Positions 18,424-60,406 of a stretch of DNA of 64,000 nucleotides are shown here, piece by piece. Below the pieces are notes generated by a model that made no database searches, was not told the DNA's origin, and saw nothing but the letters and a program-made list of their open reading frames with translations. Every line of letters starts with the position of its first letter. The first letter of the stretch is position 1. The translations under genes and the position numbers were made by a program. The DNA comes from Phaeosaccion multiseriatum. Lineage: Eukaryota; Protista; Ochrophyta, other classes. The stretch is taken from assembly GCA_965112735.1 (NCBI GenBank), contig OZ218955.1, positions 1,674,001 through 1,738,000 on the forward strand, given 5' to 3'.

Positions 18424-20613
18424 TCAAGGTGTTGACTGCCGGGACCAGGGTTCTTGCTGCTGATCCTGCTGACGCTGCTGACCACCGTTATAGTGGTGGT
18501 ACTGGTGGTACTGGTACTGGTACTGCTGGTGCTTGTATTGCTGCTGGAGCTGGTGCCGCTGGTAGTGCTGCTTCTGCTGCTGGTAAAGCTGGTATTGCTG
18601 CTGCTTCTCCTGCTGCTGCTGTTGCCGGTACTGTTGCTGCTGCTGCTGATGGGGGTGATAGTACGACTCGGAAGCCTCTGCTGATGATGGAGGGGCGATT
18701 CTCTTCTTCCTGGCCGGAGAGGGGGAATGCCGGGACGTCCAGCTGCTTGTGGTTGTTGGGCTGCGCAGATCATGAACAGGAGAGGGCGTGCTGGAACTCA
18801 CGAGTCTCATGCCTCGCGCCCCTCCTTCCTCTCGAGGGCTCATGCCTCCACCCACGAGTGTTTTCTTGTCGCCGCCTCTCTTCCCCCCCTCCCCCTCCTC
18901 CTCCCCGTCGTCCTTCCCATCTCCCTCCCCCTCCTCCTCCCACTCCCGAGGGCGTTTGGTGCGGCACGGCGATCGGAGCATTGGCCATCCTCGTCGAGGT
19001 TGTCTTCCTCCTCCCCCCTCCTCCTCTCCAGCTCTCTGCTCTTGTACTCCTCCACTCTGCTCCTGTACTTGTCCTCCTCCTCCTCCTCCTCCTCCTCCTC
19101 CTCCTCCTCCTCCTCCTCCTCCTCCTCCTCCTCCTCCTCCTCCTCCTCCTCCTCCTCCTCCTCCTCCTCCTCCTCCTCCTCCTCCTCCTCCTCCTCCTCC
19201 TCCTCCTCCTCCTCCTCCTCCTCCTCCTCCTCCTCCTCCTCCTCTGTGCTCCTTTACTACCGGCACCACCGAGGACGTCCCTCCACTGTTGAAGCGCGAG
19301 GACTCCGAGGGGTGGTAGTGGGAATAAGGCGAGAAAGCTTCATCGGCTTTTTGTAGCTGACGTCGTAATGGCGCCTTTTGCACGGGAGACAAGGGTGGTG
19401 ACGACAGCAAAGCTCTTTTCATGTTCGAAGACTGAGGGGCCGGTGGAGGTGTAGTACTCATGGAGGCCGTCGCGATAGAAGATGGAGGAGTGGACGGCAG
19501 AAGTTGCGCCACCTCCGTAAGCGTCGTCGCGTAGGAGAAGAGGCTGTGGCCGGGTATGCTGCTACGTGAAGCAGAAAGGGGGGGCGGAAAGCAGGACGCC
19601 TGGGCCTGCCGCGACGGGGGGTGGTGGCGGGCCGCGGTAGCGGCAGCGACCATCGCCATGACAGCAGTACGCTCATCCGCAGCGGAGGCGAGAGCTCCTC
19701 CTCCTTGACTTGTGTTTCTTCTTCCTCTTCGCCCCTGAGGCCCGCCCGCTGCTGCCCCTGCTGCTGCTGCTTTTGCTGCTGCTCCTGCTGCCCGTTCCGC
19801 TCCTCCTCCTCCTGCTCCTCCTCCTGCTCCTGGAGCTGCTCTTGCTCCTGCTCTTGTTCCTGCGCTTCCTCGGCCTCCTTTGTGCACAAGTCCAGAGGAG
19901 GAGGAGGAGGAGGGAGATGGCCTTGACTCGGCCTCGTCCATGAGCGCCATCGCGGCGTGCTGTGCGCACATGCCCCTGTCCTTGGCGTATCGCTTACAGC
20001 CCGCCTCGGTGCATCGCTTCACAACCGCTCCGTGAGCAACACACACTCCGCCCTTGATAGCTTGCTTCTTGCACGCCTTGGCACTGCATCGCCTGACCAC
20101 TGCGCCGTGAGACACACAAACTCCCCCCTTTTTGGCGTGTTTGGTGCAGCCCTCCGCTCGGCACGGGTAGAAGCTCCCATGGCGCACGCAAACACCGCCT
20201 CGCTGAGCCTGACTGGTGCAACCCTCTGCCCGGCAACCGCGCTTCTTCTTCTTGTGGAGAGCGCAGAAGCCGCATTGGAGGGCGGGTTGGTCGCATGCTT
20301 TCTGACGGCACACCTTCGCGGTGTAGGGGTCTGATGGAGGAACTGCAGGAGGGCCTGCCGCGATCTCGCTCGTGTACCCTTCATCCAGTGGTGCTGCTGC
20401 GAATCTTCTGCGATCTTCTTCTTGACCTTGTTGTTGCTGGTCCCGTCTAGGTAGTAATACCAGTGCCGGTTGTTGCCTGGTGGCACCACCAGAGCCTTGT
20501 CGTTGCTGTTGCTGCTGCTGCTGCTGCTGCTGCTGTTTCTCCTCCTGCTGCTGCTCGGCGACTCTACTCCTTTCCCTCCAAAGCCTTTTTAAAGTCATTC
20601 CCCCCAGTAGCAT
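18424..20613 (-). CDS. WRKY19-like Cys3His zinc-finger repeat protein, apparently intronless, with poly-Gly and a Q/Y/H-rich tail
   Basis: 729-aa ORF with five C-x4-C-x9/10-C-x2-H repeats (e.g. CRAEGCTSQAQRGGVCVRHG, CRAEGCTKHAKKGGVCVSHG, CSAKACKKQAIKGGVCVAHG). The frame after the long (GGA)n tract is uncertain. Confidence 0.75.
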   Translation of the reverse strand: MLLGGMTLKRLWRERSRVAEQQQEEKQQQQQQQQQQQRQGSGGATRQQPALVLLPRRDQQQQGQEEDRRRFAAAPLDEGYTSEIAAGPPAVPPSDPYTAKVCRQKACDQPALQCGFCALHKKKKRGCRAEGCTSQAQRGGVCVRHGSFYPCRAEGCTKHAKKGGVCVSHGAVVRRCSAKACKKQAIKGGVCVAHGAVVKRCTEAGCKRYAKDRGMCAQHAAMALMDEAESRPSPSSSSSSGLVHKGGRGSAGTRAGARAAPGAGGGAGGGGAERAAGAAAKAAAAGAAAGGPQGRRGRRNTSQGGGALASAADERTAVMAMVAAATAARHHPPSRQAQASCFPPPLSASRSSIPGHSLFSYATTLTEVAQLLPSTPPSSIATASMSTTPPPAPQSSNMKRALLSSPPLSPVQKAPLRRQLQKADEAFSPYSHYHPSESSRFNSGGTSSVVPVVKEHRGGGGGGGGGGGGGGGGGGGGGGGGGGGGGGGGGGGGGGGGGGGGGGGGGGGGGGGGGQVQEQSGGVQEQRAGEEEGGGGRQPRRGWPMLRSPCRTKRPREWEEEGEGDGKDDGEEEGEGGKRGGDKKTLVGGGMSPREEGGARGMRLVSSSTPSPVHDLRSPTTTSSWTSRHSPSPARKKRIAPPSSAEASESYYHPHQQQQQQYRQQQQQEKQQQYQLYQQQKQHYQRHQLQQQYKHQQYQYQYHQYHHYNGGQQRQQDQQQEPWSRQSTP
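19072..19243. repeat. Pure (CCT)n tract of about 57 units inside a CDS (poly-Gly)
   Basis: Uninterrupted CCT run. Confidence 0.92.
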
Positions 20614-21426: not shown

Positions 21427-22551
21427 CCACTCCCGCCGCTGCCGGGGGGCTCGCTCCCTCGTCTACTGGTGCCGTCCCCAAGGCCTCTCCTCGCAAGCGT
21501 TACTGCCGCGCGGAGGGTTGCACGAACCAAGCTCAGCGCGGAGGTGTCTGTATCCGCCACGGCAGCTTCTACCCTTGCCGAGTGGAGGGCTGCACCAAGC
21601 ACGCTAAGAAGGGGGGGGTATGTGTCGGTGAGTGAGTGAGTGAGTGAATGAGTGGGTGAGTGACTGCGTGAGTGAGTGGGTGAGTGCGCGTTTGCGTAAG
21701 TGAGTGGGTGAGTGACTAAGTTGGTGAGTGAGTGCACGAGTGAGTAAGTGAGAAAGTGAGTGAGTGAGTGAGTGAGTGACGGTATGAAGTGGTGCGATTT
21801 GCCGAATCAAGTGAATAGAGGATTGTACTCCCACCATGTTGGCTCTGTGTCCACAACACTTGGCCTGCTGCAGCCCCTCCTCCCACCCCACCTCACCGCT
21901 ACCCCTCCCGCTACCGCTACCTGACTCTGCTCTCTTCCCTCTCCTCGCATATCACACGGGCCTCGCGCACGCACGCACACACACACATGCACACACGCAC
22001 GCACACACGCACACGCGCACAGCTCACGGCGCAGTTGTGAAGCGCTGTAGAGTGAAGGCATGCAACAAGCAAGCCATCAAGGGCGGAGTGTGCGTGTACC
22101 ATGGAGCAGTGGTTAAGCGATGCGCCATTCGGGGCTGCGATCGCTACGCCAAGGAAGGGGTGCACTGCCCAGGTCACGCTGACCCCAACTCCCCCGCCGC
22201 GAGGGAGGAGGCGGCCGCTCGAGCTGCAGCTGCCTCGGGTATGACTGTGCCGTTGCCCTCCCCAGTGGTGGTGAAGAACAACAGCAGAAATAGCAGCAGC
22301 AGCAGCAGCAGTAGCAGTAGCAGTAGCAGTATGGGTAGCAGTCACACCAAGGCCACTTGCTTGGCCGCCAATAGTATGAACCCAGCCAGTGCCTCTGCGG
22401 CTGCTGCTGCCGCGACTACCTCCTCGGCCCCCGCCAAAGGCACAGACCCTGGAACTGGCAGCGGTGTGAGCGCTGCAAGCAGCGACTCAACGGGCCCTTT
22501 CGTTACCACCGTCCGAGCGAGCACCCGCAAGGCCACGAGAGGAGTAGAAGC

Positions 22552-22583
<32 letters not shown>

Positions 22584-24064
22584 TGGTGATACAGCAGCAG
22601 CAGCAGCAGAAGGGGGAGGGAGAGCGTACCCGTGTCTTTTCTGCGGCGGCAATTTTGAGCGGACTGGCGGGAAATGAGAAGACGCAGGTGGCAGTAGCAG
22701 GGAATACGCCGACGGAAGGGGGCGGGCAGGCGGAGGGGGGAGAGACTGAGCAGCAGCAGCAGCAGCAGCAGCAGGAGGAGGAGGAGGAGGAGACGGGGGA
22801 GGAGGGAGGGCCCAAGCCACAGAAAGGACCAGGCGGGAGTACGAATGAGAGAGGGGGCGGAGCCGGGGCCGGCAAGAAGGGGCAAGGACAGCCGGCAATG
22901 GCCATTGCTCACGCCGCCCAGGGGGGAGGAAGTGTGACGTCAGGCGGGGGCGATGGCCGGTCGTCTTCCAGGAAGCGGCAGACTTCTCTTTCTTGTTCCT
23001 CTTCGACGTCCTGTTGTCGTCAGGGAGACTCCTCGCAGGCTTCTGCTGCTGTCGGCCGCCTGCCGGGCATCTCGGGGGCAAGGGCTGCTGCTATTGCTGC
23101 CGCCGCTGCTGTCGCTGCCGCTATTACTGCTACTGTTACTGCTGCTGCTGTAGAACGGCCTTCTCCCTCCTCTGGTCCCTCCTCGGCTTCAGGTGGTGGG
23201 GAGAAGAACGGGAAGGAGGAGATCAACGAGGCAGCCCGGGTGGCCTTCAAGGCGAGGAAGGGAGGCATCATAACAAGGTCTAATTCTTCCAGAGGGGGGG
23301 TGAGCCGAAGTCAGTGGGGCACGGTACAGCTGTGGCAGAAGCTGTAGGAAGTTTTGCTGAACACAATGAAGGAGGAGGAGGAGGAGGAGGAGGAGGAGGA
23401 GGAGGAGGAGGAAGAGGAGGAGGGGGGGGGGCAGGGGAAGGAGAAGGAGCAGGAGGAGGAGAAGAAACGGGAAGAGCGGGAGGAGCAGGAGGAGCAGGAG
23501 GAGGAGGAGAGGGGCTGGGGGAGGTGGAGGTCATAGGAGCAGCAGTTGGTGATACAACAGCGCCTAAACGAGCCTCCACGATGGTCGTAGAGGATCCAGA
23601 CACCACTGCACCACCCGCAGCAGCCACGGCCAGCCCAATGGATGGTGACACGGTCAACCAGATCGGACTGCCGGAGGAGAAGGCCGAGCCGAAAAGGAAG
23701 AAGATAAAGTTGCAGGAGCAGCAGTTGGTAGTACAGGAGCAGCAGTCGCAGCCGCGGCAGCAGGAGGATGGGGGAGGGGAGGGAGAGCAGGAGCAACAGG
23801 GCGATGGAAATAGGCACCAACCACGGCCGGAACCTGTGGAAGCACCAACAGCCGGCGAGCAAGAACAGCCTCAGCGGCAGCTGCAGCAACGACAGGTGAG
23901 GACGCTCCATATTGATGCCTTCCTTGCTCACCCTCCCCTTCCCTCCCCTCCCACCCTACCCGTCCCTACTCGTCACCTCCTCTCGTTCTCACCCCTTGTG
24001 CTTCCTCCACCCGACTGCTTGTCCGCAGCTCCCGATGATGGCGACAGGCACGCTGAGCGCATGA
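21060..24064 (+). CDS. WRKY19-like Cys3His zinc-finger repeat protein, paralogue of the divergent neighbour, 3 exons
   Basis: Exon 21060-21627 (GGVCV), intron, exon from 22023 (AHGAVVKRC...). Four zinc-finger repeats. An apparent 1-nt frameshift lies in the G-run at ~23294-23300. Probable last exon 24029-24064. If the frameshift is real the CDS stops at 23347. Confidence 0.7.
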
Positions 24065-30200: not shown

Positions 30201-35458
<5,258 letters not shown>

Positions 35459-35610: not shown

Positions 35611-37015
35611 ATGAGTTCATTAATAGATGGAAGTTGCAACAGCAGCAGCGGTAGTCGCAGCACTGCTGGGAAGAGTCCATTACCCCTGCCCTCCCGGACA
35701 ACGTTGCCAAAGCTCATCGTAGGGAATTGGAAGCCCAGTCCTTCCAGTGAGCCACAGGCGAAGGCACTGGCTGCTCTGCTTGCAGCAAGCGATGTAGCCG
35801 ATCGAAGGATCAGGTAATTTCAGCATCATGTGGCGCCCCTACTGTTGGAGCTTAAAGCGCTTCACTTACAAGCTGTCTCTCTCTTTATAGGGGTGAAGGA
35901 GCAGCGGCTGCTGACGTATTGGTCTTCGCTCCTTCCATGCTACTTCCTGCGATGAAGAGGGAATTGGACGGAACTGCAGGTAGGCTACACGATGCTCTCA
36001 ATCGGGACATGCATAAACACGACGACCCAAAAGCTCTCTCCAACATAAAATGACACAGCTCCTAAGGCACTTCCTTACGACCAGTTCCCAAATCTGATCT
36101 GCTTGCCCGCATGTCCGAATACGAATGCCTCACCTTCTCTCCTCCCCTCCCCGAGCAGTCCAACTTGGCGCCCAAGACGGGCCATCTGAAACCGGGGGGG
36201 GGGGGGGCACTGCTGACTACCCGTACGTCATGGTCGGCCACAGCGAGAGCAGGACGGAGCTCGGTAAGGACGGCTTCACCGAACTTTGTCCTTTGTCTTG
36301 TTGTGTTGTTATGCAGGGGTTACGAAGGGCTGATAGCCTGACGTGGGTGTGTGATGTGTGCATGTTTGTGTGCCGTTTGCTTGCAGGGGATGCGGACGCA
36401 CACGTCCACGACAAGCTTCGAGCAGCGCTGGACGCGGGGCTGAAGGTCGTCCTGTGCGTAGGGGAGGGCAAGGAGGTGAGAGGAAGGACACAGGCATACG
36501 GGCAGATAGACAGACAGGGCATTATGGGCAGGTAGATAGACACACAGACATACGGAGGGACGGACGTACTGACTGACAGACAGACAGACAGACAGACAGA
36601 GAGACGCACGAGGGGACACTTTCCCTTCGCTCACTTCACGCACATCCCCGCCTCCTCCTGCCCCCCTTGTCGCCCCCCCCCCCTCTCCTGCTCCTCGATG
36701 AAGGAGTACAAGGACCATCAGACAGAGTCAGTCTGCGCCCTTCAACTCGGTAAGGGAGTAGCAGCAGAATCCGTAGCACTTGACGACAAATCAGTAGCAG
36801 TTGATGATACAGCAGTACCAGTACCGGCAGAAGCAGCCGCAGTAGCAGTTGGTGATAACAGCAGTAGCAGTAGCAGTAGCAGCAGCAGCAGGGTATACAT
36901 AGACCGCATCCCCTCTGTGCCCCCTTACCCCTCCCCCCCTCTACGCCACCAATGCTTTCTCCCCCCCTCCCCACCCCTGCTCTGCTCTTGGCAATCCCTC
37001 TCCCTTCTCTCCTAT

Positions 37016-37059
<44 letters not shown>

Positions 37060-37728
37060 TTCCATTCTCTCCCTCTCTCTCTCTCCCTCTCTCTCTCACT
37101 CTGTCTTTGTTCCATTCCTGCTCTGCTCTCATCAGGGGCGGCGCTGCAAGGCGTGAGCGCCTCTGAGGTTTCTGCGTCCGTGACGATTGCCTATGAGCCG
37201 GTATGGGCCATGGGTGGGCCTGGCCCTGGCGCTACCCCGGCCATTGCTCAGTTCACACACGCCTGTATTCGGCGCTGGCTGAGTAGCGAGTGAGTGGACC
37301 TCGGTCTCACCTCACCTCGCCTCACCTCCCCTCCCCTCTCTTCCTCACTTCACTTTACCTCACCTGTCTCTTCTTCTCCTTCCACGATGTCTCCAATATA
37401 TATACATATGTATATATGTATGCATGTATCCATATCTACCCATGTACACAACAGGTACAGCGAGGAGGTGTCTCAGAGCGTGCGCCTCCTGGTGGCAGAT
37501 CCCTCCATCAGCCCATCCACCGCCGCCTCCCACCTCACTTGCCCAGACATCGACGGCCTTGTCGTCACGGGGGGCTCTCTATCGGCAGCAAGCCTCCTTC
37601 GAATCGCCAGTGCGGCCAAGGAGGGGAGGGATGGCACGCACTGTCACCCTCACTCTGGCACCTGTGGGGCGGGGGAAAGGGCACGGAAGACGAGGCTCAG
37701 GGCCATTCCGCGGTTGTGGCCCAGAAAG
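35611..37728 (+). other. TPI: Triosephosphate isomerase-like TIM-barrel domain (N-terminal half of the fusion)
   Basis: Catalytic Asn/Lys (GNWK), His (GHSE) and Glu (YEPVW) are retained. Loop motifs AIGTG, YGGS and VGGAS appear as [13 protein letters not shown] and VTGGS. Confidence 0.85.
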
Positions 37729-39700
37729 GTACGGCTTGCGCAGGGCTGCTCGATTTGGTTTGATGATTGATGATTGATGATTTGATTTGATTCGATTCGA
37801 TTCGATTTGATTCGAGATTTTGGTTTGGATTGGCATGGGTGGGGGCGGGTATGCGAGTGGTCGGGTGTGGTCGGGTGTGGTCGGGTGGGTCAGCGATGCT
37901 ATGCAGCTTCAAACGGTGTAGCACAAAAGACTACAGACTTTAGTTCGTCTCAAGGTCCCTCCCTCCCTCCCTCTCTCCCTCCCTCCCTCCCTCCCTCCCT
38001 CCCTCCCTCCCTCCCTCCCTCCCTCCCTCCCTCCCTCCCTCCCTCCCTCCCTCCCTCCCTCCCTCCCTCCCTCCCTCCCTCCCTCCCTCCCTCCCTCCCT
38101 CCCTGCCTCCCTCCCTCCCTCCCTCCCTCCCTCGCTCCACCCCTCCCTCCCTCCCTCTCTCCCTCCCTCCCTCCCTCCCTCCCTCCCTCCGTCCCTCCCT
38201 CCCTCCATCCGTCCCTCCCTCCCTCCCTCCGTCCCTCCCTCCCTCCCTCCCTCCCTCCCTCCCTCCGTCCCTCCCTCCCTCCCTCCCTCCCTCCCTCCCT
38301 CCCTCCCTGTCCTCCCTCCCTCCCTCCCTCCCTCCCTCCCTCCCTCCCTCCCTCCCTCCCTTCCCCTCTATCGCCGTGATCAGTTGGTGGCATGTCGAAA
38401 CGAGTTGGGGGAGAGCCCCATTTGGAGCAGCGAAAGGAACCTTCTCGCGTGGGTCGACATCCCGGGCAAGCAGCTTTGGGAGTTCGATGCGGGGAAGGGC
38501 ACGAGTAGGCACTTCTCCTTGCCGGAAGTGGTGGGGTGCTGCGCATTCAGGTAAGTACGTACGTAAGTGGGTAGGTGTGTTTGGGGGATGAGATGGAACT
38601 TCTTTGCTATTTCAGTTTCATTTGAAGAAATATGTACGTAGTACTTCGTATGTATTGCGTAAACATACGAGATGGTCGAGGGTGCTTTGTGTTGGTGTGT
38701 GGGAGGGGCATCCGATGATTTTCTTCGCAGCTCTACATTACTTCGATGGCTCAGTTCAAACAAAGCTTCCGCTACAGATTGTTTTAATTAACTTCTCCCT
38801 CCCTTCTTCCCTCCCTCCCTCCCCTCGCCCCCCTCCCTCCCTCCCTCCCTCCCTCCCTCCCTCCCTCCCTCCCTCCCTCCCTCCCTCCCTCCCTCCCTCC
38901 CTCCCTCCCTCTCCTCCCCTCTTTCCCGCCGCTCCTCTTAGACGAGGTGGCGGTTACATCCTCGGTCTGAAGAACGGACTCACTCGCTTCGACCCTGCCA
39001 CCGGCAACCTCGACCGAATCGGCAAGGGGAAGGGTATGATGGCCTTTGAACCAGGCCTCCCTACCCGCCCCAACGACGGCCGAGTGGCCAGTAGAGACGG
39101 CTCCCTCATCTTCGGCTCGTACAACGAGAAGCACAAGGTGGATGGAGCAAGTGTAGCTGGGCTGTACCGCTTTAAGCCCAACGGAGAGGTGCTGGAGGAG
39201 ATTTTGGAGCATCGATTTCGAGTGTCGAATTGCATCAGCTTCTCCCCGGGGGGTGACGTTATGTACTTTACGGTGAGAGAGCCTTTTTTGAGTCTCACCA
39301 TACAGCACAGGACCGCAGAGCAGAGCAAAGCAGAGGAGAGTGGAGGGGAGAGGAGGGGAGGGGGGAGGAGAGGGGGGGGGCTGGGAGGGGAGGGGTGAGG
39401 AGGGAGGGGGCGAGAGGAGAGGGGTGGCAAGGGGTGAGGAGGGAGGGGGCGGGGAGGGTTGGGGAAGGAATGGGAGGAGTGAGGCGAGAAGAGGGGGGGT
39501 AGGAAACGTCATGATTAGTGTTTATAGAAGCGAGCTGACCTTGTGCACGTGCATCTCTTACGTTCCTCTCTCCCTCTCTCTGTCTTCTTTTCTCTCTCTA
39601 CCTCTCTCTCCCTGTCTCTCTCTCTGCCTCTCTGCCACTCTCTCTCACTCTCTCTCACTCGCTCTCTCTCTCACATACACTCTCTCTGTCCCTCTCTGTC

Positions 39701-39746
<46 letters not shown>

Positions 39747-40411
39747 CTCTGCCCCCAGGACTCGCCCACGAGGCAAATCTCGGCCTTCGATTACTCGGAG
39801 GACTCTCCCGCGCTGAGCAACAGGCGCCTTGTATACGAGGTAGCCTTATCCTCCTCCTCCTCCTGCTGCTGCTGCTGCTGCATCACCAACTGCTTCTGCA
39901 CACTATCTCACCGCTACTCACTACCATGTCGCTCTCTTTCGATCGTCTCGATGCCCCTCTCCCCTCCTCAGATGCCGCCCTCGATGGAGGGTAAGGAAAG
40001 GAATGCGAGGAGCACCAGGACGTTTCAAGGAACAAGTTCACCAATGTCTTTTGATTGCTTCCCCTCTGCGCAAAGCTTCCCCCCTGCCCCCTTGCTTACC
40101 CCCCCCCCCCTCCCCATCCACTGCCATCCTCCTCCCCCCCGGGGACCCATCCATCAGGCTCCCCTGATGGGGCATGTGTGGATGCGTCTGGGCACTTATG
40201 GGTGGCCTTCCCCGGAGCAGGAGTGGTGCTCTGCATTGACCCCGAGGGCGGCGAGGTGAGAGAGTGAGAGAGAGTGAGAGAGAGTGAGAGCGTGGTGGGA
40301 GGGTGAGGGACCACTCCGGAGCACCGCCTCGGGGAGAGGAAGGGGGGGGAAGTGGGACCCCACCGGTACTGTGCTCAAACCCGACTGCACACACACTCTC
40401 TCTCTCTCTCC

Positions 40412-40455
<44 letters not shown>

Positions 40456-40962
40456 GTCTGTCTCTCTCTCTGTGTCTCTCTCTGTCTGTCTCTGTCTCTC
40501 TCTCTCTCTCCGTCTCTCTCTCTCTTTCTCTCTCTCTCTCCCTCTGCCTCTCCCTCTCTCCCTCTCTCTCTCTTGATCTTCCCCTCTCTCTCACACATAC
40601 ACGCACTCTCTCAGGTCTCTCTCTCCTCTTCCGTCTCTATCTCTCCCTCTCCCCCCCACATCGTCCCCCCCCCCCTCCACCCCTCCCTCTCACCCCCCGC
40701 CCTCCCCCCCCCCCCCTCCTCCCTGTCCTGACACCAGCTGCTGATGGAGGTTCCCGTGCCCTGCTCCATGCCCACCTCCTGCACCATCGGCGGCCCTGAG
40801 CTGAACATCCTCTTCATCACCACACGAGCTCCTGACGGGGGAGAGCTCTTCTCTGTACAGCTGCCAGATGGGGTGGTGGGGGTGTCGGAGCCGAGCGTGG
40901 GGGAGGAGGAGCCCGTTGGTGGCCATCCTTTCTCTCACGACTCCTTCCCCATCCCTTCCTAA
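35611..40962 (+). CDS. Fusion protein: divergent triosephosphate isomerase-like domain plus SMP-30/gluconolactonase (regucalcin-like) domain, 13 exons
   Basis: Exons 35611-35813, 35891-35979, 36159-36263, 36387-36475, 36704-36749, 37136-37289, 37455-37728, 38384-38550, 38942-39272, 39759-39839, 39972-39990, 40158-40255, 40738-40962 all join in frame at GT-AG sites. TPI motifs: [35 protein letters not shown]-30 motifs: [44 protein letters not shown]. Confidence 0.75.
37957..38361. repeat. About 400-bp (CCCT)n array forming the 3' part of the intron that joins the TPI and SMP-30 domains
   Basis: CCCT tandem array ending just before the CAG acceptor at 38381-38383. Confidence 0.92.
38384..40962 (+). 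other. SMP-30/gluconolactonase/LRE six-bladed beta-propeller domain (C-terminal half of the fusion)
   Basis: The Glu, Asn, Asn and Asp residues typical of the SMP-30 active site are present in LGESP, RPND, VSNC and PDG. Confidence 0.88.
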
Positions 40963-41029
40963 AAAATTGGATGTGTGAGGCTCTGGAGGGAGGGAGGAGT
41001 GGTACAGAACCTCAAGACGGATTGGGTGG

Positions 41030-41158
41030 TATTCATAACCCTTCAGGATGATATTCATAACCCTTCAGGTCATTAGACCTTAACCAATGTTGATGCCATG
41101 ATCAGTTCATTAGACCTTAACCAATGTTGATACCATGATCAGTTCATTAGACCTTAAC
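41030..41158. repeat. Short tandem duplications (18-bp direct repeat; 37-bp unit x ~2.4)
   Basis: TATTCATAACCCTTCAGG occurs twice. TCATTAGACCTTAAC... recurs at 41070, 41107 and 41144. Confidence 0.85.
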
Positions 41159-41191
41159 GAGATGAAAAACATCGATGTGAAAATGGAAAGG

Positions 41192-41310
41192 TCGACCCCT
41201 GACGCACTATCCGCTATCCGCTATCGCCGGCGCCAGCCGATCCGCTATCTGTTATCGGCCGGCGACCAATAGCGCGCTATCCGGCTGGGCGATAGTGCGT
41301 CAGGGGTCGA
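41192..41310. mobile_element. MITE-like element with perfect 20-bp terminal inverted repeats
   Basis: TCGACCCCTGACGCACTATC (41192-41211) is the exact reverse complement of 41291-41310. GAAAGG flanks both sides (41186-41191, 41311-41316). Several internal GCTATC repeats. Confidence 0.6.
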
Positions 41311-41454
41311 GAAAGGGGGGGAGGGGGGGGAGGGGGGGGGGAATTGAAATTTTGGATATTTTTCTCTTCCCTTTTTTCATGTGGTCTCTAGCACGGCGAC
41401 TCTGAACAGGAGCTGCCAGATGGCACTTAAGGGTGTAATATATTATAGGAGCTG

Positions 41455-41541
41455 CCAGGTAAGGCACCTGGTACAGGAGCTGCCAGGTAAGGCACCTGGT
41501 AAGGCACCTGGTAAGGCACCTGGTAAGGCACCTGGTAAGGC
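41455..41541. repeat. 12-bp tandem repeat (GGTAAGGCACCT)n upstream of ACLY
   Basis: About 5-6 copies, interspersed with AGGAGCTGCCAG. Confidence 0.85.
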
Positions 41542-42024: not shown

Positions 42025-45000
42025 ATGTCAGCCAAAGCCATCCGGGAGTACCACGGCAAGAAGCTTGTGAGCAAGTGGCTCAACGACTATGCAGGCGACC
42101 ATACATGCGACGTTGAGCCTCGCTGCGTGCAGCTCAAGCTTTCGGCCTTCCAAGATGCGCCGAGAGAGGACGTCTACAAGGTTGTGGAGCAGGAAAACCC
42201 CTGGCTGCTCACCACGCCCCTCGTTGTGAAGCCCGACCAGCTCATCAAGCGCAGAGGCAAGGCCGGCCTGCTGGCGGTCAACAAGAAGTGGGGCGAGGTC
42301 ATGGCCTGGGTGGACGAGCGCATGGGCAAGGAGCAGCAGGTGGAGGTGGTCACGGGCATCCTCGACACCTTCATCGTGGAGCCCTTTGTGCCCCACGAGC
42401 AGACCGACGAGTACTATGTGTGCATCAACAGCGACCGCGAAGGGGAGGAGTTCCTGTTTACGCACGAGGGGGGCGTGGACGTGGGGAACGTGGACGAGAA
42501 GGCGCTTCGTCTCGCCGTGCCCATCGGCACGGACCCCACCCTGGAGGCCATCTCCACCTCCCTCTTTGCGCACGTGCCCGAAGAGCGCAAGGACATGCTC
42601 TCCAAGTTCCTTCAGGCCCTCTTCAAGCTCTACCGCGACCTCAACTTTGTCTACATGGAAATCAACCCCATCGTCGTGGTGGGCAACCGCATCACCCCCC
42701 TGGATATGGCGGCAAAGATCGACGAGACGGCCGCCTTCCTGTGCGGGCCCAAGTGGGGCGACATTGACTTCCCCGCCCCCTTCGGCCGCCCGGAGTTCCC
42801 GGAAGAGGCCTACATCAAGAAGCTGGACGCCTCCACAGGGGCAAGCTTGAAGCTCACCATCCTCAACCACAGCGGCCGCGTATGGACCATGGTGGCCGGA
42901 GGAGGCGCCTCCGTGGTGTACGCAGACACCATTTCGGACTACGGTTTCGGAAAGGAGCTGGCCAACTACGGAGAGTACTCGGGGGCCCCTTCCGAGTCTC
43001 AGACCTGTTCCTACGCACGCACCATCCTCGGCCTCATGACGCGCGTCAAGGACCCCAAGGGTAAGGTACTCATCATCGGAGGAGGCATTGCCAACTTTAC
43101 CGATGTGGCCGCCACGTTTACGGGCATCATCACCGCCCTCAAGGGGTATGCCGAGGAGCTGCGCGAGGGAAACATTACTGTTTGGGTCCGCAGGGCGGGG
43201 CCCAACTACCAGGAGGGGCTCACCAAGATGCGCAACGTAAGTAAGGGCGTACCATTCATACACCCACTCTCTGACCTTCTCTCTCTCGCTCTTCTCTGTC
43301 TGTCTCTTTCTCTCTTTTTCGGGAGACCTTTCGGGGCTCTGTCCCTGGCTCTCTCTCTCTCTCTGTACGCGATGCTTGTTTCAGTCTCATTTCACGCAGA
43401 CCGCCTCTCTCTCCTAAACCTCCCCACCCCCCTCCCCGCCACTCTCCCTTCTTTCACCTACCTTCATCCCCAAAGGTCGGGCTCGAGATCGGAGTCCCTA
43501 TCAAAGTGTTCGGGCCCGAGACGCACATCACCGCCGTGGTGCCCATGGCCCTGGGCCTTGTGGAGCAGGGAAGCACTCCCGAGTTCGATCCCGAGATGGA
43601 GACGCAGAGCATGAGCAGGGGCACCTCCAGCAAAGCGCTGTCCCCCTCCGCCACCTCCGCCTCAGACGAGGCAGCCGCAGCAGGAGAGGCCATCGCTGCC
43701 GCCGCTGCCGCCGCCGCTGAGCGTTTGGAGCAGGTAGGCACACACCATACGGTCCAGGACTTTACCCCGACCACCCGTGCCATTGTGTATGGGCTGCAGC
43801 GCCGAGCGGTGCAGGGGATGCTGGACTTTGATTTCATGTGTAAGCGTGAGAAACCTTCCGTGGCCGCCATGGTGTTCCCCTTCAGCGGCAACCACTACCT
43901 CAAGTTCTACTGGGGTACCGCGGAGACGCTCATTCCCGTGTACACGTCCACGGCGGAGGCGTGCCAGAAACACACCGACGCGAGTGTCATGGTGAACTTT
44001 TCATCCTTCCGCTCCGTGTATGAGACGACCATGGACGCTCTCAAGCACGAGCAGCTGAGGACCGTGGCCATCATCGCAGAGGGCGTGCCGGAGAGCCAAA
44101 CAAGAGAGATTATCAAGGAGGCAGACAGCAGGGGGGTGGGACTCATCGGCCCCGCCACGGTGGGCGGCATCAAGCCGGGATGTATGCGCATTGGTAATAC
44201 GGGCGGCATGCTCGACAACATTGTGATGAGCAAGCTGTACCGCGCCGGCTCGGTGGCCTACGTGTCCAAGTCGGGGGGCATGTCCAATGAGCTCAATAAC
44301 ATCATTGCTCGCAACTCCGACGGGGTATACGAGGGTGTGGCCATTGGAGGAGACCGATACCCGGGGACGCGCTTCATTGACCATATTCTTCGCTATCAGG
44401 ACAACCCGGATGTCAAGATGATGGTGTTGCTGGGAGAGGTGAGCGCATGAGGCTTAGGCTTTTTTGGGAGTCTCGAGCTTAATTTCGAGATTGAAATTCA
44501 GTATGTTATTCGATATTCGGGATTCACGGTTCGAGATTCGATAGGGGTTCATTAAGGGTGAGGGTCATGGGCTAGGCACAGGGTTCGGGTTCGGGTCAGG
44601 TTTTGGATCCCTGGAGAGCCCCCTTCTCAAACCCCCCCACCCCCCCTTCCGTGGTTGCTTTTTTTTGTCTTCATTTTTTGAAAGGTAGTGGTGGGGGCCC
44701 CCCTTTTCTAAAACCGTCACACTCTTTACTCCTCTGTGAACATCCCCACCACACGTAACTAACACGTAACTTACACGTAACTAACATGACTCACAATTAG
44801 GTGGGAGGAGTGGACGAGTACGACGTGGTGGATGCCATCAAGTCCGGGCGCGTTACCAAGCCCGTCGTGGCCTGGTGCATCGGCACATGCGCAAGCATCT
44901 TCCCCTTCGAGGTTCAGTTTGGTCATGCGGGCGCGTGCGCGAGAGGCCAGGGGGAAACCGCCGCTGACAAGAACAAGGGCATGAAGGAGGCTGGCATCAT

Positions 45001-46292
45001 CGTGCCGGATAACTTCGACCAGTTCCCGGCCAAGATCAAGGAGACGTTTGACGCCCTGGTCCAGCAAGGGGCCGCGGTGCCGGTGGCCGAGCCTCCTGTA
45101 CCCAAGGTACCCATGGACTACACCTGGGCCAAGCGCCTGGGTCTGGTGCGCAAACCGGCCAACTTCATTAGCTCCATCTCTGACGACCGCGGTGAGGAGC
45201 TGAGCTACGCAGGCATGCCTATCAGCGAGGTGTTTAGCGAGGACTGCGGCGTGGGGGGTGTGCTCAGTTTGCTGTGGTTCCGACGCCGCCTTCCTGCCTA
45301 TGCCACCAAGTTCATCGAAATGATTCTCATGGTGACGGCTGACCACGGACCCGCCGTTTCGGGGGCGCACAACACGATTGTGGCCACCCGTGCGGGCAAG
45401 GACCTGGTGTCGAGTCTGTGCTCGGGCTTGCTTACGATTGGGCCTCGCTTTGGGGGTGCGTTGGACAAGGCGGCGGAGATGTTCACCTCTGGATCGGATG
45501 CGGGGGTGGATGCGGCGCAGTGGGTCAAGGACAAACGCAAGGAGAACCAACTCATCATGGGCATTGGCCATCGCATCAAGTCCCTCTCCAACCCGGACAT
45601 GAGGGTCAACATCATCCGCGACTACGCACAGGTACAGAGGGAGGGAGGGAGGGAGAGAGGGAGGGAGGGAGGGAGGCAAGCAAGTAGTAGCCTCATGCTG
45701 TCTGCAAAACGAACCCACGTTGGTATCAGTAGTTGCTCTCACTTAGAAAAGCCTATTTTACTCTACTCCCACTCACATGCCTCTCCCCTTCCTCCCTTCC
45801 TCCCTCCCTCCCTCCCTCCCCCCCTTCCTCCCTCCCTCCCTCCCTCCCTCCCTCCCTCCCTCCCTCCCTCCCTCCCTCCCTCCGTCCGTCCCTCCCTCCC
45901 TCCCTCCCTCCCTCCCTCCCTCCCTCCCTCCCTCCCTCCCTCCCTCCCTCCCTCCCTCCCTGCCTCTCCTCCCCTTACAGGCGCACTTCAAGAACAACAC
46001 GGTGCTGGACTTTGCTCTCGCTGTGGAGAAGGTGACCACCGCAAAGAAGGAGACGCTCATTCTTAACGTGGACGGGTGCATCGCCGTATGCTTTGTGGAC
46101 CTGCTCCGCAGCTGCGGGGCCTTCACCAAGGAGGAAGCGGACGAACTGATTGCCAACGGGTGTCTGAACGGACTCTTCGTGCTGGGCCGCTCCATGGGCT
46201 TTATCGGACACTTTTTGGACCAAAAGCATCTCAAGCAGCCCCTCTACAGGCACGAGTGGGAGGACATTACCTACATTCAGCAGGAGAAGTGA
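42025..46292 (+). CDS. ACLY: ATP-citrate lyase, single-chain (fused beta+alpha) form, 4 exons
   Basis: Exons 42025-43236, 43476-44438, 44801-45631, 45981-46292. Motifs [85 protein letters not shown], catalytic phospho-His [41 protein letters not shown]. Confidence 0.97.
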
Positions 46293-52280: not shown

Positions 52281-55200
52281 TCCTTGCCAACAGGGGCTGA
52301 CCTCCACCATGTGTCGGAACAAACACCACCAACTTCGTGCCAAAGAAAGCCTTCGTACTCGTGGCCAACCACACCAATTCGCAATCGGTCTCCTCCTTAC
52401 CGTCTCCGGCTTGAGCTGATTGCCCATGACAAGAAGCCCACCGAGTGTCAGCTCGCGCAGAAGCTCCCCCTGCGGCATGGTGAGGCACTGTGATAAGGAC
52501 AAGCCGCGGGAGGAGAGGCACGAGTACGCCGTCGCCAGCACACGATAGCCCTGGGGGAGGAGGAGGAGGAGGAGAGATCGAGGAGGGAGAGGGAGAGGGG
52601 AAGGGAGAGCGAGCGAAGGAGAAGGGTGGGTGAGAGAGGGAAAGGGAGAGAAGAGAATGATAAGAGAGAGTGGGAGAGTGAGTGAGAGGGAAAGTGAAGT
52701 AGAGCGAGAGAAGAGGGAGCGAGCGGAGGAGCAAGATAAGGGGGGTAGAGACGAGTGAGAGAGACGAGTGACTCCCCATGTATGTGCTCAGAGTGCTTCT
52801 AAATTCAATGAGGTGCCCCATCTGTTGGGCACGCGCGAGAATGCAAGACTCGCTCGCTTCTTCCTCCTCCTCCTGCTGCTCCTGCTCCTCCACCTCCTGC
52901 TCCTGCTCTTGCTCCTCCACCTCCTCCTCCTCCTCCTCCTCCTCCTCCTCCTCCTCCTCCTCCTCCTCCTCCTCCTCCTCCTCCTTCCCTTCAGCTCTTC
53001 GACTGATACTCCTATCCCATCAGCGAATCAAATCCATCCAACTCCTTCGATCCCTCCATCGGTCTATAGACATGTCTTCTTGCCTTGGTGGTGAGGTCGA
53101 GGAGCTCGGTGTCAAGGCCCTCCGGCAGAGACGCGCTGGTGCACAGAAGCCGAACGCTCTCGGGCGCGCCCTTCACTACAAGCAGCAAGCGACCTTGACC
53201 GCCAATCTACTCTCCCCACAGGGGATGGCAGTGGATGGGTAGGGAGGGAGGGAGGGAGAGAAGAAGGGGAGGGAGGGGATGGGGTGTGATGGTGGGGGGC
53301 ATATACATGTATGAGTAGTGGTGGTGGGGGGCATATACATGTATGAGTAGTGGTGGTGGGGGCATATACATGTATGAGTAGTGGTGGTGGGGGGCATATA
53401 CATGTATGAGTAGTGGTGGTGGGGGGCATATACATGTATGAGTAGTGGTGGTGGGGGCATATACATGTATGAGTAGTGGTGGTGGGGGCATATACATGTA
53501 TGAGTAGTGGTGGTGGGGGCATATACATGTATGAGTAGTGGTGGTGGGGGCATATACACGTATGAGTAGTGGTGGTGGGGGCATATACATGTATGAGTAG
53601 TGGTGGTGGGGGGCATATACATGTATGAGCAGTGGTGGTGGGGGCATATACACGTATGAGTAGTGGTGGTGGGGGGCATATACATGTATGAGTAGTGGTG
53701 GTGGGGGGCATATACATGTATGAGTAGTGGTGGTGGGGGCATATACATGTATGAGTAGTGGTGGTGGGGGCATATACATGTATGAGTAGTGGTGGTGGGG
53801 GGCATATACATGTATGAGTAGTGGTGGTGGGGGGCATATACATGTATGAGTAGTGGTGGTGGGGGCATATACACGTATGAGTAGTGGTGGTGGGGGCATA
53901 TACATGTATGAGTAGTGGTGGTGGGGGGCATATACATGTATGAGCAGTGGTGGTGGGGGCATATACATGTATGAGTAGTGGTGGTGGGGGGCATATACAT
54001 GTATGAGTAGTGGTGGTGGGGGGCATATACATGTATGAGTAGTGGTGGTGGGGGCATATACACGTATGAGTAGTGGTGGTGGGGGGCATATACATGTATG
54101 AGTAGTGGTGGTGGGGGCATATACATGTATGAGTAGTATGAGTACGAGGTAGAGACACGGGTGCAAGCAAGCAGAACGAAAAACGACACTCAACACAGAA
54201 AACCAAGAAAATGGGAGAAAAAAAGAAGGAACAGAGGTGAAAAGAGGGCGCAAGGAGGGACCAAAAGGTGACTGAAGAGCACCCCCCCCACACACACACG
54301 CACACACGCACACACGCACACACATCCCTCCCTCCCTCTCCCCTTCTCCTCACCTCCATTGCCAGAACCGCCATGATTCGTGAGTCCGCATCGAAGGGAA
54401 ACACGCGAAGTAGCGCGAGGGGGGAGGCCCCCCAGCCAGGAGAGGCGTGACCTCCATCCACAGCACCAGCCACAGCAGCACGAGGCTCGTCACTTTCACT
54501 ACTCTCCCCGTCCATGACAGAGGAGAGGGACGGCAGCACGAGGGCGTATGCGATTGAGGGCACCGCCACTCGCGCCTGCCCCAGTCCCTGTGAGGAGGGT
54601 AGAGCTGCAAGCCCGCCTCCCTGCTGCTGTTGTATCACCAACTGCCCCACCCCCGCCTGTTGCCCCTCCGTGTGCAAAGCGAGGGCGGACACAAGTCCGT
54701 CCCATGTCTTCTCGCCCCTCACAACGAGGTCCCAGCCCAACCAAGAAAACATTTCCTGCTCCAGAGGGTCGCTGATGTGATGTGATCCATAGACACAAAG
54801 AAAGAAACAGACAGAAAGGTGTCAGTAGTCAGGGACGAGGGGTGGGGGACCGGGGTGGTCAGGGGCCAAAGGGTCAGAGAGGGAGGAGCGGCCAGGGTCA
54901 GAGAGGGAGGAGCGGCCAGGGTCAGAGAGGGAGGAGCGGCCAGGGTCAGAGAGGGAGTAGCGGCCAGGGTCAGAGAGGGAGTAGCGGCCAGGGTCAGAGG
55001 GGGAGGAGCGGCCAGGGTCAGAGAGGGAGGAGCGGCCAGGGTCAGAGGGGGAGGAGCGGCCAGGGTCAGAGGGGGGGAGAAGGGTCAGGGTGAGAGAGGG
55101 GTATCGGGGGGTACGGGGTCAGGGGGAGTGGTGTCAGGGGCGGGGGGTGTGGTGAAACGTAGGGTAACGATACACCACACACCATTACACCTTCCACTCC

Positions 55201-58200
55201 CTCGCTCCCTCGCTCTCTCGCAATGCACACTGCCCACCGATCCCCTGCCCCACGCCCACCCACTGACAACGCCTAACAAACTGAAAGTGAAACTGAAATT
55301 GACATTGAAACTGAAAAGTGAAAGAGAAACTCACCCCACGATGCGGCCCTGTTGAATATGTCCGCCGTGTCTCCCCTCCAATCCATGTCCAGACGCCTCC
55401 TCCTCTCCCTCCCCTAGAACGAGCCGGTCCAGGCTGTGGCAGGCCGCTAGAGAGTAAGTCATGGGAAGACCGCCCCCCCTGGGGTCGAAGAGGTAGGGAG
55501 GGGGTGGGGGTGGGGGTGGCGGGGCTGCCATCACAGGCTGTGGGGACCTACTGCTGCCACTGCCACTGCTCCACCTGCTGCCATCCCCCGAGCCATCCTC
55601 AGAGGCGTGGCTGCAGGTGTGGGTGTGGTGTGCGTCAGGCGGCGCTGCTCGTGGAAGAGCGGCGTGCTCGATCAGCCCTGAGAGTTGTGCGCTGCTTCTT
55701 TCGCGGCCATTGCCCTCCCCCCTTCCCTCTTCTCCGTTGTTCGCCACCACCCCTCCTCCTCCTCCTCCTCCTCCTCCTCCTCCTCCTCCTCCTCCTCCTC
55801 CTCCTCCTCCTCCTCCTCCTCCTCCTCCTCCTCCACCTCCGCCTCCTCCCCGTTCTTGAGCATAGTCCCCTTCTTGCTTGTCTCCCGCTCTCTCGTGCCC
55901 CCCCCCATGCTTCACCACCATCACCCCCGCTACAGTGTCGCTGTCGGTGGTGAGAGTACCCGTCTTGTCATAGCAAACGCAGTCCACATTGCCCGCCGTG
56001 GCAATGTGCTCTGGCGACGTACTGGAAATGCCCTTTCGCTGCAGAGCACCAAACGCCGCAGCAGTGCCAATTGTGAGCGCCAGAGGAAGGGCAGGAGGGA
56101 TAACGATGGTGAACAGGTCCATGGAGCGGTACCAAATAACTGCAGCAGGTCAAGACAGAGAGAGAGAGGGAGAGAGAGAGAAAGGGGGGGGGGAGGGGGA
56201 GTAAGGGAGAGAGAACGGGGGGAGGGGGGGGGGAGGGTGGGAAGGAGGACGGAAGGAGAATGGGTTGACACATGTCAAGCAGCAAGCATATCAACATGTC
56301 AAGCAGCTAGCTTACAAGCAAGAGAGAGATGTACCGCCTACACCACACGAACGACACTCCCCCCCCCCCCTCTCCCCTACCTATTCTCTCCGCATGCAAG
56401 ACGAGGTTGGCGTAAAGTGCGTACCACGCGACGAAGACGACAACGACCACGAGAAGGACCTTAATGTACACCAAGGCAGCGCTCTGGTGCTCCACGTGGG
56501 TCTCAGACTGCTGCGGAAACCTGGGGAGGAGGAGGGGGAGGAGGAGGAGGAGCAGAAGGAATGAATGCCATCCGTGGGGGATGAAACGAAGGAATGAATG
56601 GAATACTACAGCGCTCCTGTGCCTTTGTTGACTTACTTCATAGCTCGCATGAGCTTCCCTTTGGCCGTGTCACATCCCGTGCGTACAGCCACGGCTAGCA
56701 CAGGCATATGGGTCGTCTTCATCTCGCTCAGCCCCCCGCCGCCCCCCTCCCCGTCTGGTGTATCACCAACTGCAGACCCGGGCGACTGCAAGAGCGACCA
56801 CACCGATGAGTTTCGCCTCTCCTGTACCACCAACTGCTGCTGCTTGCCGGAAGAGGGAAGAGCATCCTCTGCCGTATCACCAACTGCTGTATCACCAACT
56901 GCAGCGGATGCGTCCGCCGGATGCAGGGGGACGACGGGCTTGACTTGAAGCACTTGGGTACCGCTGAGCAAGACGTGCTTCTCCATCTTCTTCTGCTCCA
57001 GGGGGTTCCATGTGTCGAACCAGAAACCTTCACCCCCTCCTGACGACAGATCCAGAGGAAGTGCGTATTTTGCGACAGGGGCACTCTCCCCCGTGAGCAT
57101 TGCTTCACTCACGAGCACTTGGCCCGTGAGAAGGACGAGATCGCAGGGAGAGAGCATGCCCGGAGTCACCACCACCACGTCACCAGGGCACACGGCAGAC
57201 GACATTATGTCAACAGGCTCAAAGCGGGGGGGAGGAGGAGGAGGACAGGGAGGTGGAGGCGGCGGCGGCGGAGGGACAGAGGTGGGCACTGCGGAGGAGG
57301 AGGAGGTGGTGGAGGAGGGAGCAGTCACAGTCTCTTCCTCCTCCTTCACCACCTCCTCCTCCTCCTCCACCACCACCTCCTCCTTTTCCTCCTCCGCCCC
57401 GTCTGTTCTCCCTTGCCACCGCTGCTGTATCACCAACTGCTGCTGCTGCTTGTCCTTCTTGGGCATACTGGTAGCAGCAGGAGGAGCGGAGGAGGCGAGC
57501 CCCGCCTTCTTGAGGGGGGCCTCCAGCCCTGCAATGTGCGCGAGCAGCATCTGTGAGTGGCGTACTCCCACCGCCTCCACCACCACAGAGAGCAGCGTGA
57601 GCAGGACAATGACCCAGGCGTACATAACGTAACCGCCTACCATCCACACCACGATGGAGAACACCTGGAAGGCACAGAAGGGAGACATGACTTCGCGCAT
57701 ACAGAGCGTGGCCAGGTGGTCCACCTGAGAAGGGGGGAGGGAGGAGGGAGGAGGGTCACGATAAACACATGACACACATACACACACACACACACACACA
57801 CAGAGAGAGAGAGGCGATGTCGGACATTCAGTAATGGTGCTGCTTGGGGGGGGGGGTCGGCGCAGAGTACGAGACGGGGCTGGAAAAGGGGTCGATCTTT
57901 TCATTAAACCCTCCGAGAAGGAAGGCGCAGGTCCTCGCTCAGGCTCCGCTTCTTTGAACCTCTCGGTCATACGTACGTAACGTACATATGTGCGTACTTA
58001 CCTCCATTGACATGGTGTTTGAGCCGTAGGTGCGTGCGCGTGTGGCTTGGGCTTGCTGCTGCTCCTCTCCTCCCCTCCCCTCGCCGCCCGCCCCGCCCAG
58101 CGACTCTCGCAGACGCTCATACGCGATGCTGTGGAGCTGCGCGTAAGACATGCCTGACGGAGCAGAGAAGAGCAGCGTAGAGGCGTATGGACAAGGCACG

Positions 58201-59928: not shown

Positions 59929-60406
59929 TTCTTTCTTCCACCCCCCCCTTGGCTTAAATAATAGTCTGTACGTATGAGGTGTGTCAAGACACCATTTCAC
60001 CCTATTTTGGTCCTCCCTCCCCACCGCTACTAGCTGATCCCAGATGAGTAAGTACGCTGGTCGCTTGGGGTGGAAGGAGTTTCCATCGCTGCTGGAGATC
60101 ACCGAACGTCACCCCCCAGTGAGGAGTCCGAAGAAGGAGGAGAAAATCTTGGAATGACAGAAAGGGGTCCGGCAAATTAGCCACACTTATCCTTGCGCTC
60201 AGTCCCAGAAAGGCGGGCACCTCCAGCGTGTGTGGGGGTGACAACGTAAGGGCTGACGAGGGGCTTGCAGTGTGTGAGTGGATTGAGTGTGAGGAGGGAG
60301 CGTCGCCAACCACTTTCATGCGTAGAACCAACTGGTCTTTTACCACACTGCTCTGCTTAAATCTCTCTTTTCTCTTTTCTCCTTTTCTCGCCTCTCTTTG
60401 GTCTTC
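59929..60406. promoter_or_regulatory. Probable bidirectional promoter (P5B ATPase / methyltransferase)
   Basis: About 480 bp between the inferred divergent starts. Confidence 0.4.

Follow-up and report, generated by a model that had tools for sequence, protein, structure and literature searches.

Gene models at the locus

We analysed a window of 64,000 nucleotides (nt) of Phaeosaccion multiseriatum DNA (contig OZ218955.1 of assembly GCA_965112735.1, positions 1,674,001 to 1,738,000), which is GC-rich (~58%), laden with microsatellites and rich in introns. The subject of this study is the plus-strand region 35611-40962, where a set of exons resembling triosephosphate isomerase (TPI) is followed directly by exons of a lactonase of the SMP-30/gluconolactonase family. 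A first-pass annotation of the sequence had proposed that both halves are spliced in frame into one gene. The exon models of the two halves were rebuilt base by base from the sequence (Table 1). The TPI-like model starts with an ATG at 35611 and comprises seven exons (E1 to E7) over 35611-37728, which yield a stop-free open reading frame (ORF) of 960 nt or 320 amino acids; all six introns have GT-AG boundaries. The lactonase model comprises six GT-AG exons (L1 to L6) over 38384-40962, which join to 306 amino acids and end with a TAA at 40960-40962. No paralogue of either half was found elsewhere in the window.

The TPI-like half

Exon pieces were used as queries for profile and PDB searches, and the Pfam gathering scores (20.1 bits for TIM, 26.3 bits for SGL) served as cut-offs. 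Three separate pieces match the Pfam TIM family (PF00121) with 35.8, 27.5 and 26.8 bits and cover profile positions 95-244, and solved TPIs in the PDB match the TPI-like pieces with a best value of 4e-08. The first two exons behave differently: neither Pfam nor a phmmer search of the PDB recognised E1 alone as TPI, and E2 alone went undetected too. With NCBIfam the exon pieces gave TPI matches below threshold throughout (best 33 bits against a whole-protein cut-off of 293), and E4, E6 and E7 weakly match the TPI part of NF010569, far under its cut-off of 883. Since the Pfam scores for TIM, like those for SGL given below, lie over the cut-offs, the domain identities are far beyond chance.

The catalytic set of TPI, namely Asn11, Lys13, His95 and Glu165 (chicken/yeast numbering), is retained completely: in GNWK (E1, read directly), in GHSE (E3, aligned) and in AYEPVWA (E6, aligned). 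The motifs GNWK, VFAPS and LGAQD in the first three exons are readable directly and have canonical spacing, and the segment with the catalytic His in E3 aligns to IPWVILGHSERR in the PDB alignment. According to the PDB alignments, loop 6 (E6) reads MGGPGPG against a canonical IGTGK and loop 7 (E7) reads VADPS against YGGS, each with an insertion of one residue, and loop 8 (E7) reads TGGSL against GGASL. Furthermore, 22 residues separate the AQD Gln from the catalytic His, versus 31 in canonical TPI. The approximately nine residues lost comprise loop 3, the site of the dimer interface, together with most of helix 3. The barrel thus departs from canonical TPI (EC 5.3.1.1) both in the phosphate-gripper loops 6, 7 and 8 and in loop 3/helix 3. 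In place of the missing loop 3/helix 3 we find five glycines, encoded by a run of 14 G at 36194-36207 in E3. Such a run is mutable and error-prone, and the frame of the whole TPI-like gene hangs on its exact length. Judged by its sequence, the upstream gene is a remodelled TPI in which the catalytic tetrad is kept and the phosphate grip and dimer interface are non-canonical, in agreement with the remodelling that the first-pass annotation had recognised.

Within E7 the barrel ends at about residue 57. The remaining 34 amino acids form a linker that leads up to a candidate splice donor.

The lactonase half

Matches to the Pfam SGL family (PF08450) are above the cut-off for L1 (40.6 bits), L2 (50.1 bits) and L5 (35.4 bits), which supports the SMP-30 identity assigned earlier. 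L3 and L6 score below the cut-off yet are collinear with the others, and jointly the pieces span profile positions 1-244. The metal-binding and catalytic positions of SMP-30 are Glu18, Asn103, Asn154 and Asp204 (human SMP30 numbering). Equivalents of all four are kept, with GESPIW and SPDG aligned to regucalcin and RPNDG and SNC aligned to the xylonolactonase XylC. The SGL profile begins at residue 8 of L1, which corresponds to position 14 of the regucalcin chain, so that, compared to regucalcin, the lactonase lacks just the initiator Met and about six residues.

The first-pass annotation had also remarked that the lactonase lacks an in-frame ATG at its beginning, and this holds over a longer distance: no in-frame ATG exists upstream, though the frame is open back to 37922, L1 contains no Met, and the first in-frame Met lies in L2, in the second blade. 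A direct, unspliced start of the lactonase was rejected for the same reason. From its sequence, the downstream gene is a complete SMP-30/gluconolactonase whose first recognisable exon offers no ATG. By family, its product likely hydrolyses or forms a sugar lactone in a metal-dependent manner.

The junction between the two halves

The TPI-like exons end on a codon boundary (phase 0) at AAG/GTACGG, between 37728 and 37729. This is the sole in-phase GT past the end of the barrel and lies 42 nt before the read-through stop: when left unspliced, E7 continues for 13 further codons until a TGA at 37768-37770, inside a GATT-type microsatellite. On the other side of the spacer the acceptor gatcag ends at 38383 and the lactonase frame opens at 38384, again in phase 0. 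In between, Tandem Repeats Finder (TRF) reports 101 copies of TCCC/CCCT at 37956-38361, an array of 406 bp. The donor and its phase, the (CCCT)n intron, the acceptor that opens directly into the lactonase and a TPI stop near 37770 had all been described in the first-pass annotation and were recovered here. An alternative start at ATG 37631, spliced via the 37728 donor, was discarded because it is in the wrong phase. The spacer contains no AATAAA poly(A) signal, but none follows the lactonase stop either, which makes this observation uninformative.

The 3' half of the candidate fusion intron is pyrimidine-rich, as it is in 12 of the 13 confident introns and in the other long introns of the gene, and (CCCT)n arrays are also found 5' of the acceptors at 38941 and ~45980. 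These properties support 38384 only as the start of an internal exon, which is needed irrespective of whether there is one gene or two.

Several of the long introns have, in addition, a purine-rich 5' half. The (CCCT)n arrays at 37956-38361, 38795-38918 and 45786-45973 each lie directly 5' of a plus-strand acceptor and in this respect look like oversized polypyrimidine tracts.

Table 1. Exons and candidate splice features of the TPI-like and lactonase halves (positions within the window)
Feature	Position	Strand	Content	Basis
TPI-like E1	35611..35813	+	ATG; Ser/Pro-rich N-terminal extension of 33 amino acids; beta-1 with GNWK (catalytic Asn and Lys)	exon model; motif read from sequence
TPI-like E2	35891..35979	+	beta-2, VLVFAPS	motif read by eye only
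TPI-like E3	36159..36263	+	LGAQD; Gly5 replacing loop 3/helix 3; catalytic-His segment	sequence and PDB alignment
TPI-like E4	36387..36475	+	helix 4 and beta-5, LKVVLCVGE	Pfam TIM 8.2e-09; PDB alignment
TPI-like E5	36704..36749	+	in frame	AG and GT boundaries
TPI-like E6	37136..37289	+	catalytic Glu kept; one-residue Gly/Pro-rich change at the tip of loop 6	Pfam TIM 2.7e-06; PDB TPI matches 4e-08
TPI-like E7	37455..37728	+	altered loops 7 and 8; barrel end; linker; candidate donor	Pfam TIM 4.5e-06; PDB alignments
Candidate fusion intron	37729..38383	+	655 nt; read-through stop; GATT-type microsatellite; (GGTCGGGTGT)3 repeat; (CCCT)101 array; acceptor gatcag	
Rival first exons of the lactonase	37835..37888	+	ATG 37835, end 37864 or 37888 (ending in VVGW); ATG 37851, end 37874 (MRVVGCGR)	
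Lactonase L1	38384..38550	+	blade 1; GESPIW with Glu18 equivalent; no Met	Pfam SGL 2.9e-10
Lactonase L2	38942..39272	+	RPNDGR and SNC motifs	Pfam SGL 3.6e-13; aligned to XylC (PDB 7plb)
Lactonase L3	39759..39839	+		exon model; sub-threshold SGL
Lactonase L4	39972..39990	+	19-nt micro-exon, needed for the frame; least certain exon	AG and GT boundaries
Lactonase L5	40158..40255	+	SPDGACVD, Asp204 equivalent	Pfam SGL 1.2e-08; aligned to regucalcin chain positions 200-231
Lactonase L6	40738..40962	+	last exon and TAA stop	sub-threshold SGL

One gene or two

The reading we favour, with a probability of roughly 0.45, is that of a single gene of 13 exons encoding a TPI-like/SMP-30 fusion protein of 626 amino acids. 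Splicing from 37728 to 38384 would remove the stop codon of the TPI-like half together with the (CCCT)n array. The product would then consist of a divergent TPI-type barrel at the N-terminus, the 34-residue linker and a six-bladed SMP-30/gluconolactonase propeller at the C-terminus. In such a protein the propeller may open or close a sugar lactone. The barrel would probably be a monomer that has lost its tuning to triose phosphates; it might perform an enediol-type isomerisation of a related substrate or serve as a non-catalytic partner domain. The fusion itself could have originated from read-through splicing that skipped the original ATG exon of the lactonase.

Several observations argue for this reading. 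A complete and functional-looking lactonase has no in-frame ATG, either in L1 or in the open frame that extends to 37922, and the stop codon which would terminate the TPI-like protein is supplied by a microsatellite. If the genes were separate, only ~65-80 nt would remain from stop to ATG, versus 1062 nt in the next gap (from the lactonase stop to the ATG of the neighbouring ATP-citrate lyase (ACL) gene). Codon usage of E3-E7 is not significantly different from that of the lactonase (p = 0.07), and the candidate intron shares its pyrimidine-rich 3' half and (CCCT)n array with other introns. Finally, stramenopiles offer a precedent of an N-terminal TPI joined to another enzyme (PMC3527533).

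A number of results weigh against the fusion, starting with the donor itself. We built a donor matrix from the 13 confident introns of this locus and the ACL gene, scoring the known donors leave-one-out. The fusion donor obtains 3.4 bits, which is lower than 12 of the 13 confident donors, and the C at its +4 position is unseen among them. Of all GT dinucleotides in the window, 21% score at least as high, and in a null model 32% of the open tails of 55 codons in the window hold an in-phase GT that equals or exceeds it. Equal or better values (3.6-4.6) are reached by the donors of the rival mini-exons, whose phase likewise fits the 38384 acceptor. Codon usage of the whole TPI-like half differs from that of the lactonase (p = 0.0002), which is because of E1-E2. 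The genome also tolerates very short spacers, as is apparent from the 152 nt between the TPI-like ATG and that of a divergent gene, where a very compact bidirectional promoter is implied.

Searches for relatives yielded no protein or orthologue in support of the fusion. With E7 as query, a HMMER search of 1.84 billion representative proteins returned just three junk matches at E ~6e-4, and neither the protein itself nor a close relative. Word-indexed protein searches with L2 and with the barrel region of E7 gave nothing among proteins under 469 and 276 amino acids, respectively, a length range that would have excluded fused relatives in any case. When metagenomes were scanned with L2, one locus was retrieved, a bacterial repeat-propeller protein that is not a relative. 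Neither the ACL-bearing contig of the brown alga Choristocarpus tenellus nor that of a Logan assembly shows synteny, as TPI-like and SGL exons are absent from both.

These same data bear on the idea of two adjacent genes, which we regard as a serious possibility while placing it below even odds. The TPI-like gene would end at the TGA at 37768-37770 and the lactonase would start at a mini-exon of its own (ATG 37835 or 37851), using the same acceptor. Three combinations of an ATG with an in-phase donor outscore the fusion donor, and they would give the lactonase an N-terminus of 15-25 residues before GESP, compared to ~15 in regucalcin. The codon usage difference between the whole halves and the very short promoter regions in this genome also suit two genes. 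On the other hand, the 65-80 nt available must then accommodate the 3' end of the first gene as well as promoter and 5' untranslated region of the second, and the ATGs at 37763, 37770 and 37777 become upstream ORFs unless transcription starts at most ~55 nt from the start codon. The mini-exon donors moreover fall within a 10-bp tandem repeat, and ATG/donor pairs as good as these occur by chance in 25% of random windows of 192 nt. The donor matrix and the null models do not discriminate between the fusion and the separate genes. What stands of the in-frame fusion put forward in the first-pass annotation is that both halves are phase-compatible; the fusion itself is not demonstrated, given the weak donor, rival mini-exons which that annotation had overlooked, and signals at the level of chance. 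On the role in channelling or metabolite repair suggested there for a bifunctional enzyme, the data are neutral.

It might also be argued that the TPI-like half is a relic, in decay or devoid of catalytic activity, which is co-transcribed with the lactonase, be it as a degenerate extension of the N-terminus or, in part, as 5' leader, so that the lactonase would be the sole enzyme. This appears rather improbable. In its favour, five glycines from a mutable homopolymer take the place of loop 3 and helix 3, changes are seen in loops 6 and 7, and E7 has no resembling protein among the representatives searched. Synonymous codon usage of E1-E2 does not look like that of coding sequence either: on a scale trained on ACL, with a GC content at third codon positions (GC3) of 0.41-0.51, these exons score -0.73, under the introns (-0.25) and under their own off-frames. 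This counts against the fusion as well, and the 5' end (E1-E2) is the least certain part of the TPI-like model. E3-E7, however, score -0.01 versus -0.36 and -0.30 off-frame, a frame-specific coding signal that speaks against a relic, as do seven exons in frame with six canonical introns and no stop, and the retention of all four catalytic residues. Moreover, E7 contains no in-frame ATG, and therefore a lactonase protein made via this junction must start in the barrel exons or upstream of them. An assembly artefact, in which microsatellite-rich sequence was collapsed or mis-joined between unrelated loci, seems very improbable. The 406-bp (CCCT)n array and other microsatellites dominate the interval and are hard to assemble, but arrays of the same type occur within the window in two further introns whose genes are confidently modelled, and both flanks are alike in composition and intron style.

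A more far-reaching version of the fusion is that a naturally monomerised TPI paralogue, devoid of loop 3 and helix 3 and with rebuilt gripper loops but an intact catalytic tetrad, has been joined to an active lactonase and that both halves work, giving a lineage-specific bifunctional isomerase-lactonase for sugar acids or lactones other than triose phosphates. We consider this unlikely.

If true, the fusion would combine domains of two well-known families in a way that is new, and would be the second, independent stramenopile case of a TPI-type barrel attached to another sugar-metabolising enzyme. The engineered monomeric TIMs would have a natural counterpart in its barrel, with the catalytic residues kept and the phosphate grip rebuilt. 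As such it would provide a test case for retargeting of the TIM active site, and it would hint at a lactone or sugar-acid step of algal metabolism that is as yet uncharacterised. With separate genes, an unusual TPI paralogue would be left beside a lactonase that is ordinary and has a very small first exon, which is of modest interest.

Other features of the window

Upstream of the TPI-like ATG, at 35024-35458 and probably continuing into 33929-34720, lies the divergent minus-strand gene mentioned above. It encodes an acidic, Ser/Asp/Glu-rich product and has no Pfam match.

Downstream of the lactonase, the ACL gene (42025-46290, plus strand) combines the ATP-grasp, citrate-binding and citrate-synthase-like parts in one gene with long exons and few introns. 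Its best matches are to Choristocarpus tenellus (73-76% identity) and to an oomycete (65-68%), and no identical protein was found; by this similarity the window is of stramenopile origin. One of its introns carries a (CCCT)47 array (45786-45973) directly 5' of the acceptor. The spacer between lactonase and ACL contains, within 41024-41540, two copies of a 22-bp repeat, three of a 37-bp repeat and 28/12-bp tandem repeats of GGTAAGGCACCT. It also contains an imperfect inverted repeat of 29 nt (41192-41220 and 41282-41310) with 61 nt between the arms. These repeats could represent a small hairpin or an element resembling a miniature inverted-repeat transposable element (MITE).

Further away, the long minus-strand ORFs 56636-57970 and 58120-60102 are 147 nt apart, and an E1-E2 ATPase domain is present in the downstream one. 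Both could be exons of a single P-type ATPase gene, or they could form another very tightly spaced gene pair, and the gap between them bears on how short same-strand spacers from stop to ATG get in this genome. A 31-bp minisatellite (27 copies, 96% identity) occupies 53286-54137, inside a minus-strand ORF of 546 amino acids without a Pfam match. The long ORFs 18427-20613 (minus strand) and 21836-23344 (plus strand) stand head to head, both with WRKY19-type zinc-finger motifs (PF24906). Scans of the window with Rfam and for tRNAs were empty.

Comparison with known systems

A literature search found no description of a TPI-SMP-30 fusion, in line with the first-pass annotation, to which none was known, and did find the TPI-GAPDH fusion of stramenopiles. 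The latter has a mitochondrial presequence, is supported by transcripts and is present in many taxa (PMC3527533). It resembles the candidate described here in that an N-terminal barrel of the TPI family is joined to a second metabolic enzyme, in stramenopiles in both cases. There, however, the partner is GAPDH and the TPI is the canonical glycolytic one, whereas here an SGL propeller follows a strongly remodelled barrel for which the searches returned no relative. The PGK-TPI fusion (NF010569, Thermotoga type) likewise combines TPI with another enzyme, as our candidate would, but its TPI is C-terminal, canonical and bacterial.

The lactonase half belongs to the same Pfam family as SMP-30/regucalcin (PDB 3g4e, 4gnb) and as XylC, the xylonolactonase of Caulobacter (PDB 7plb; PMC8529709), and is of similar size (~300 amino acids). 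It has the motif set GESP(I/V)W, R-x-N-D-G, S/T-N-x and P-D-G in common with these proteins. It differs from them in its low identity (PDB E-values of 1e-3 to 5e-3 per exon) and in the absence of a start codon of its own.

For the barrel, the closest parallel is found among engineered proteins: the monomeric TIMs 1tri, 1tti, 1mss and 1ml1 are among the PDB matches of E6. MonoTIM was reportedly made by shortening loop 3 by 7 residues, and the interface loop 3 is shortened in the present barrel too, as the Gln-to-His distance indicates. The deletion seen here is natural and larger, probably also takes helix 3, and is accompanied by changes in loops 6 and 7.

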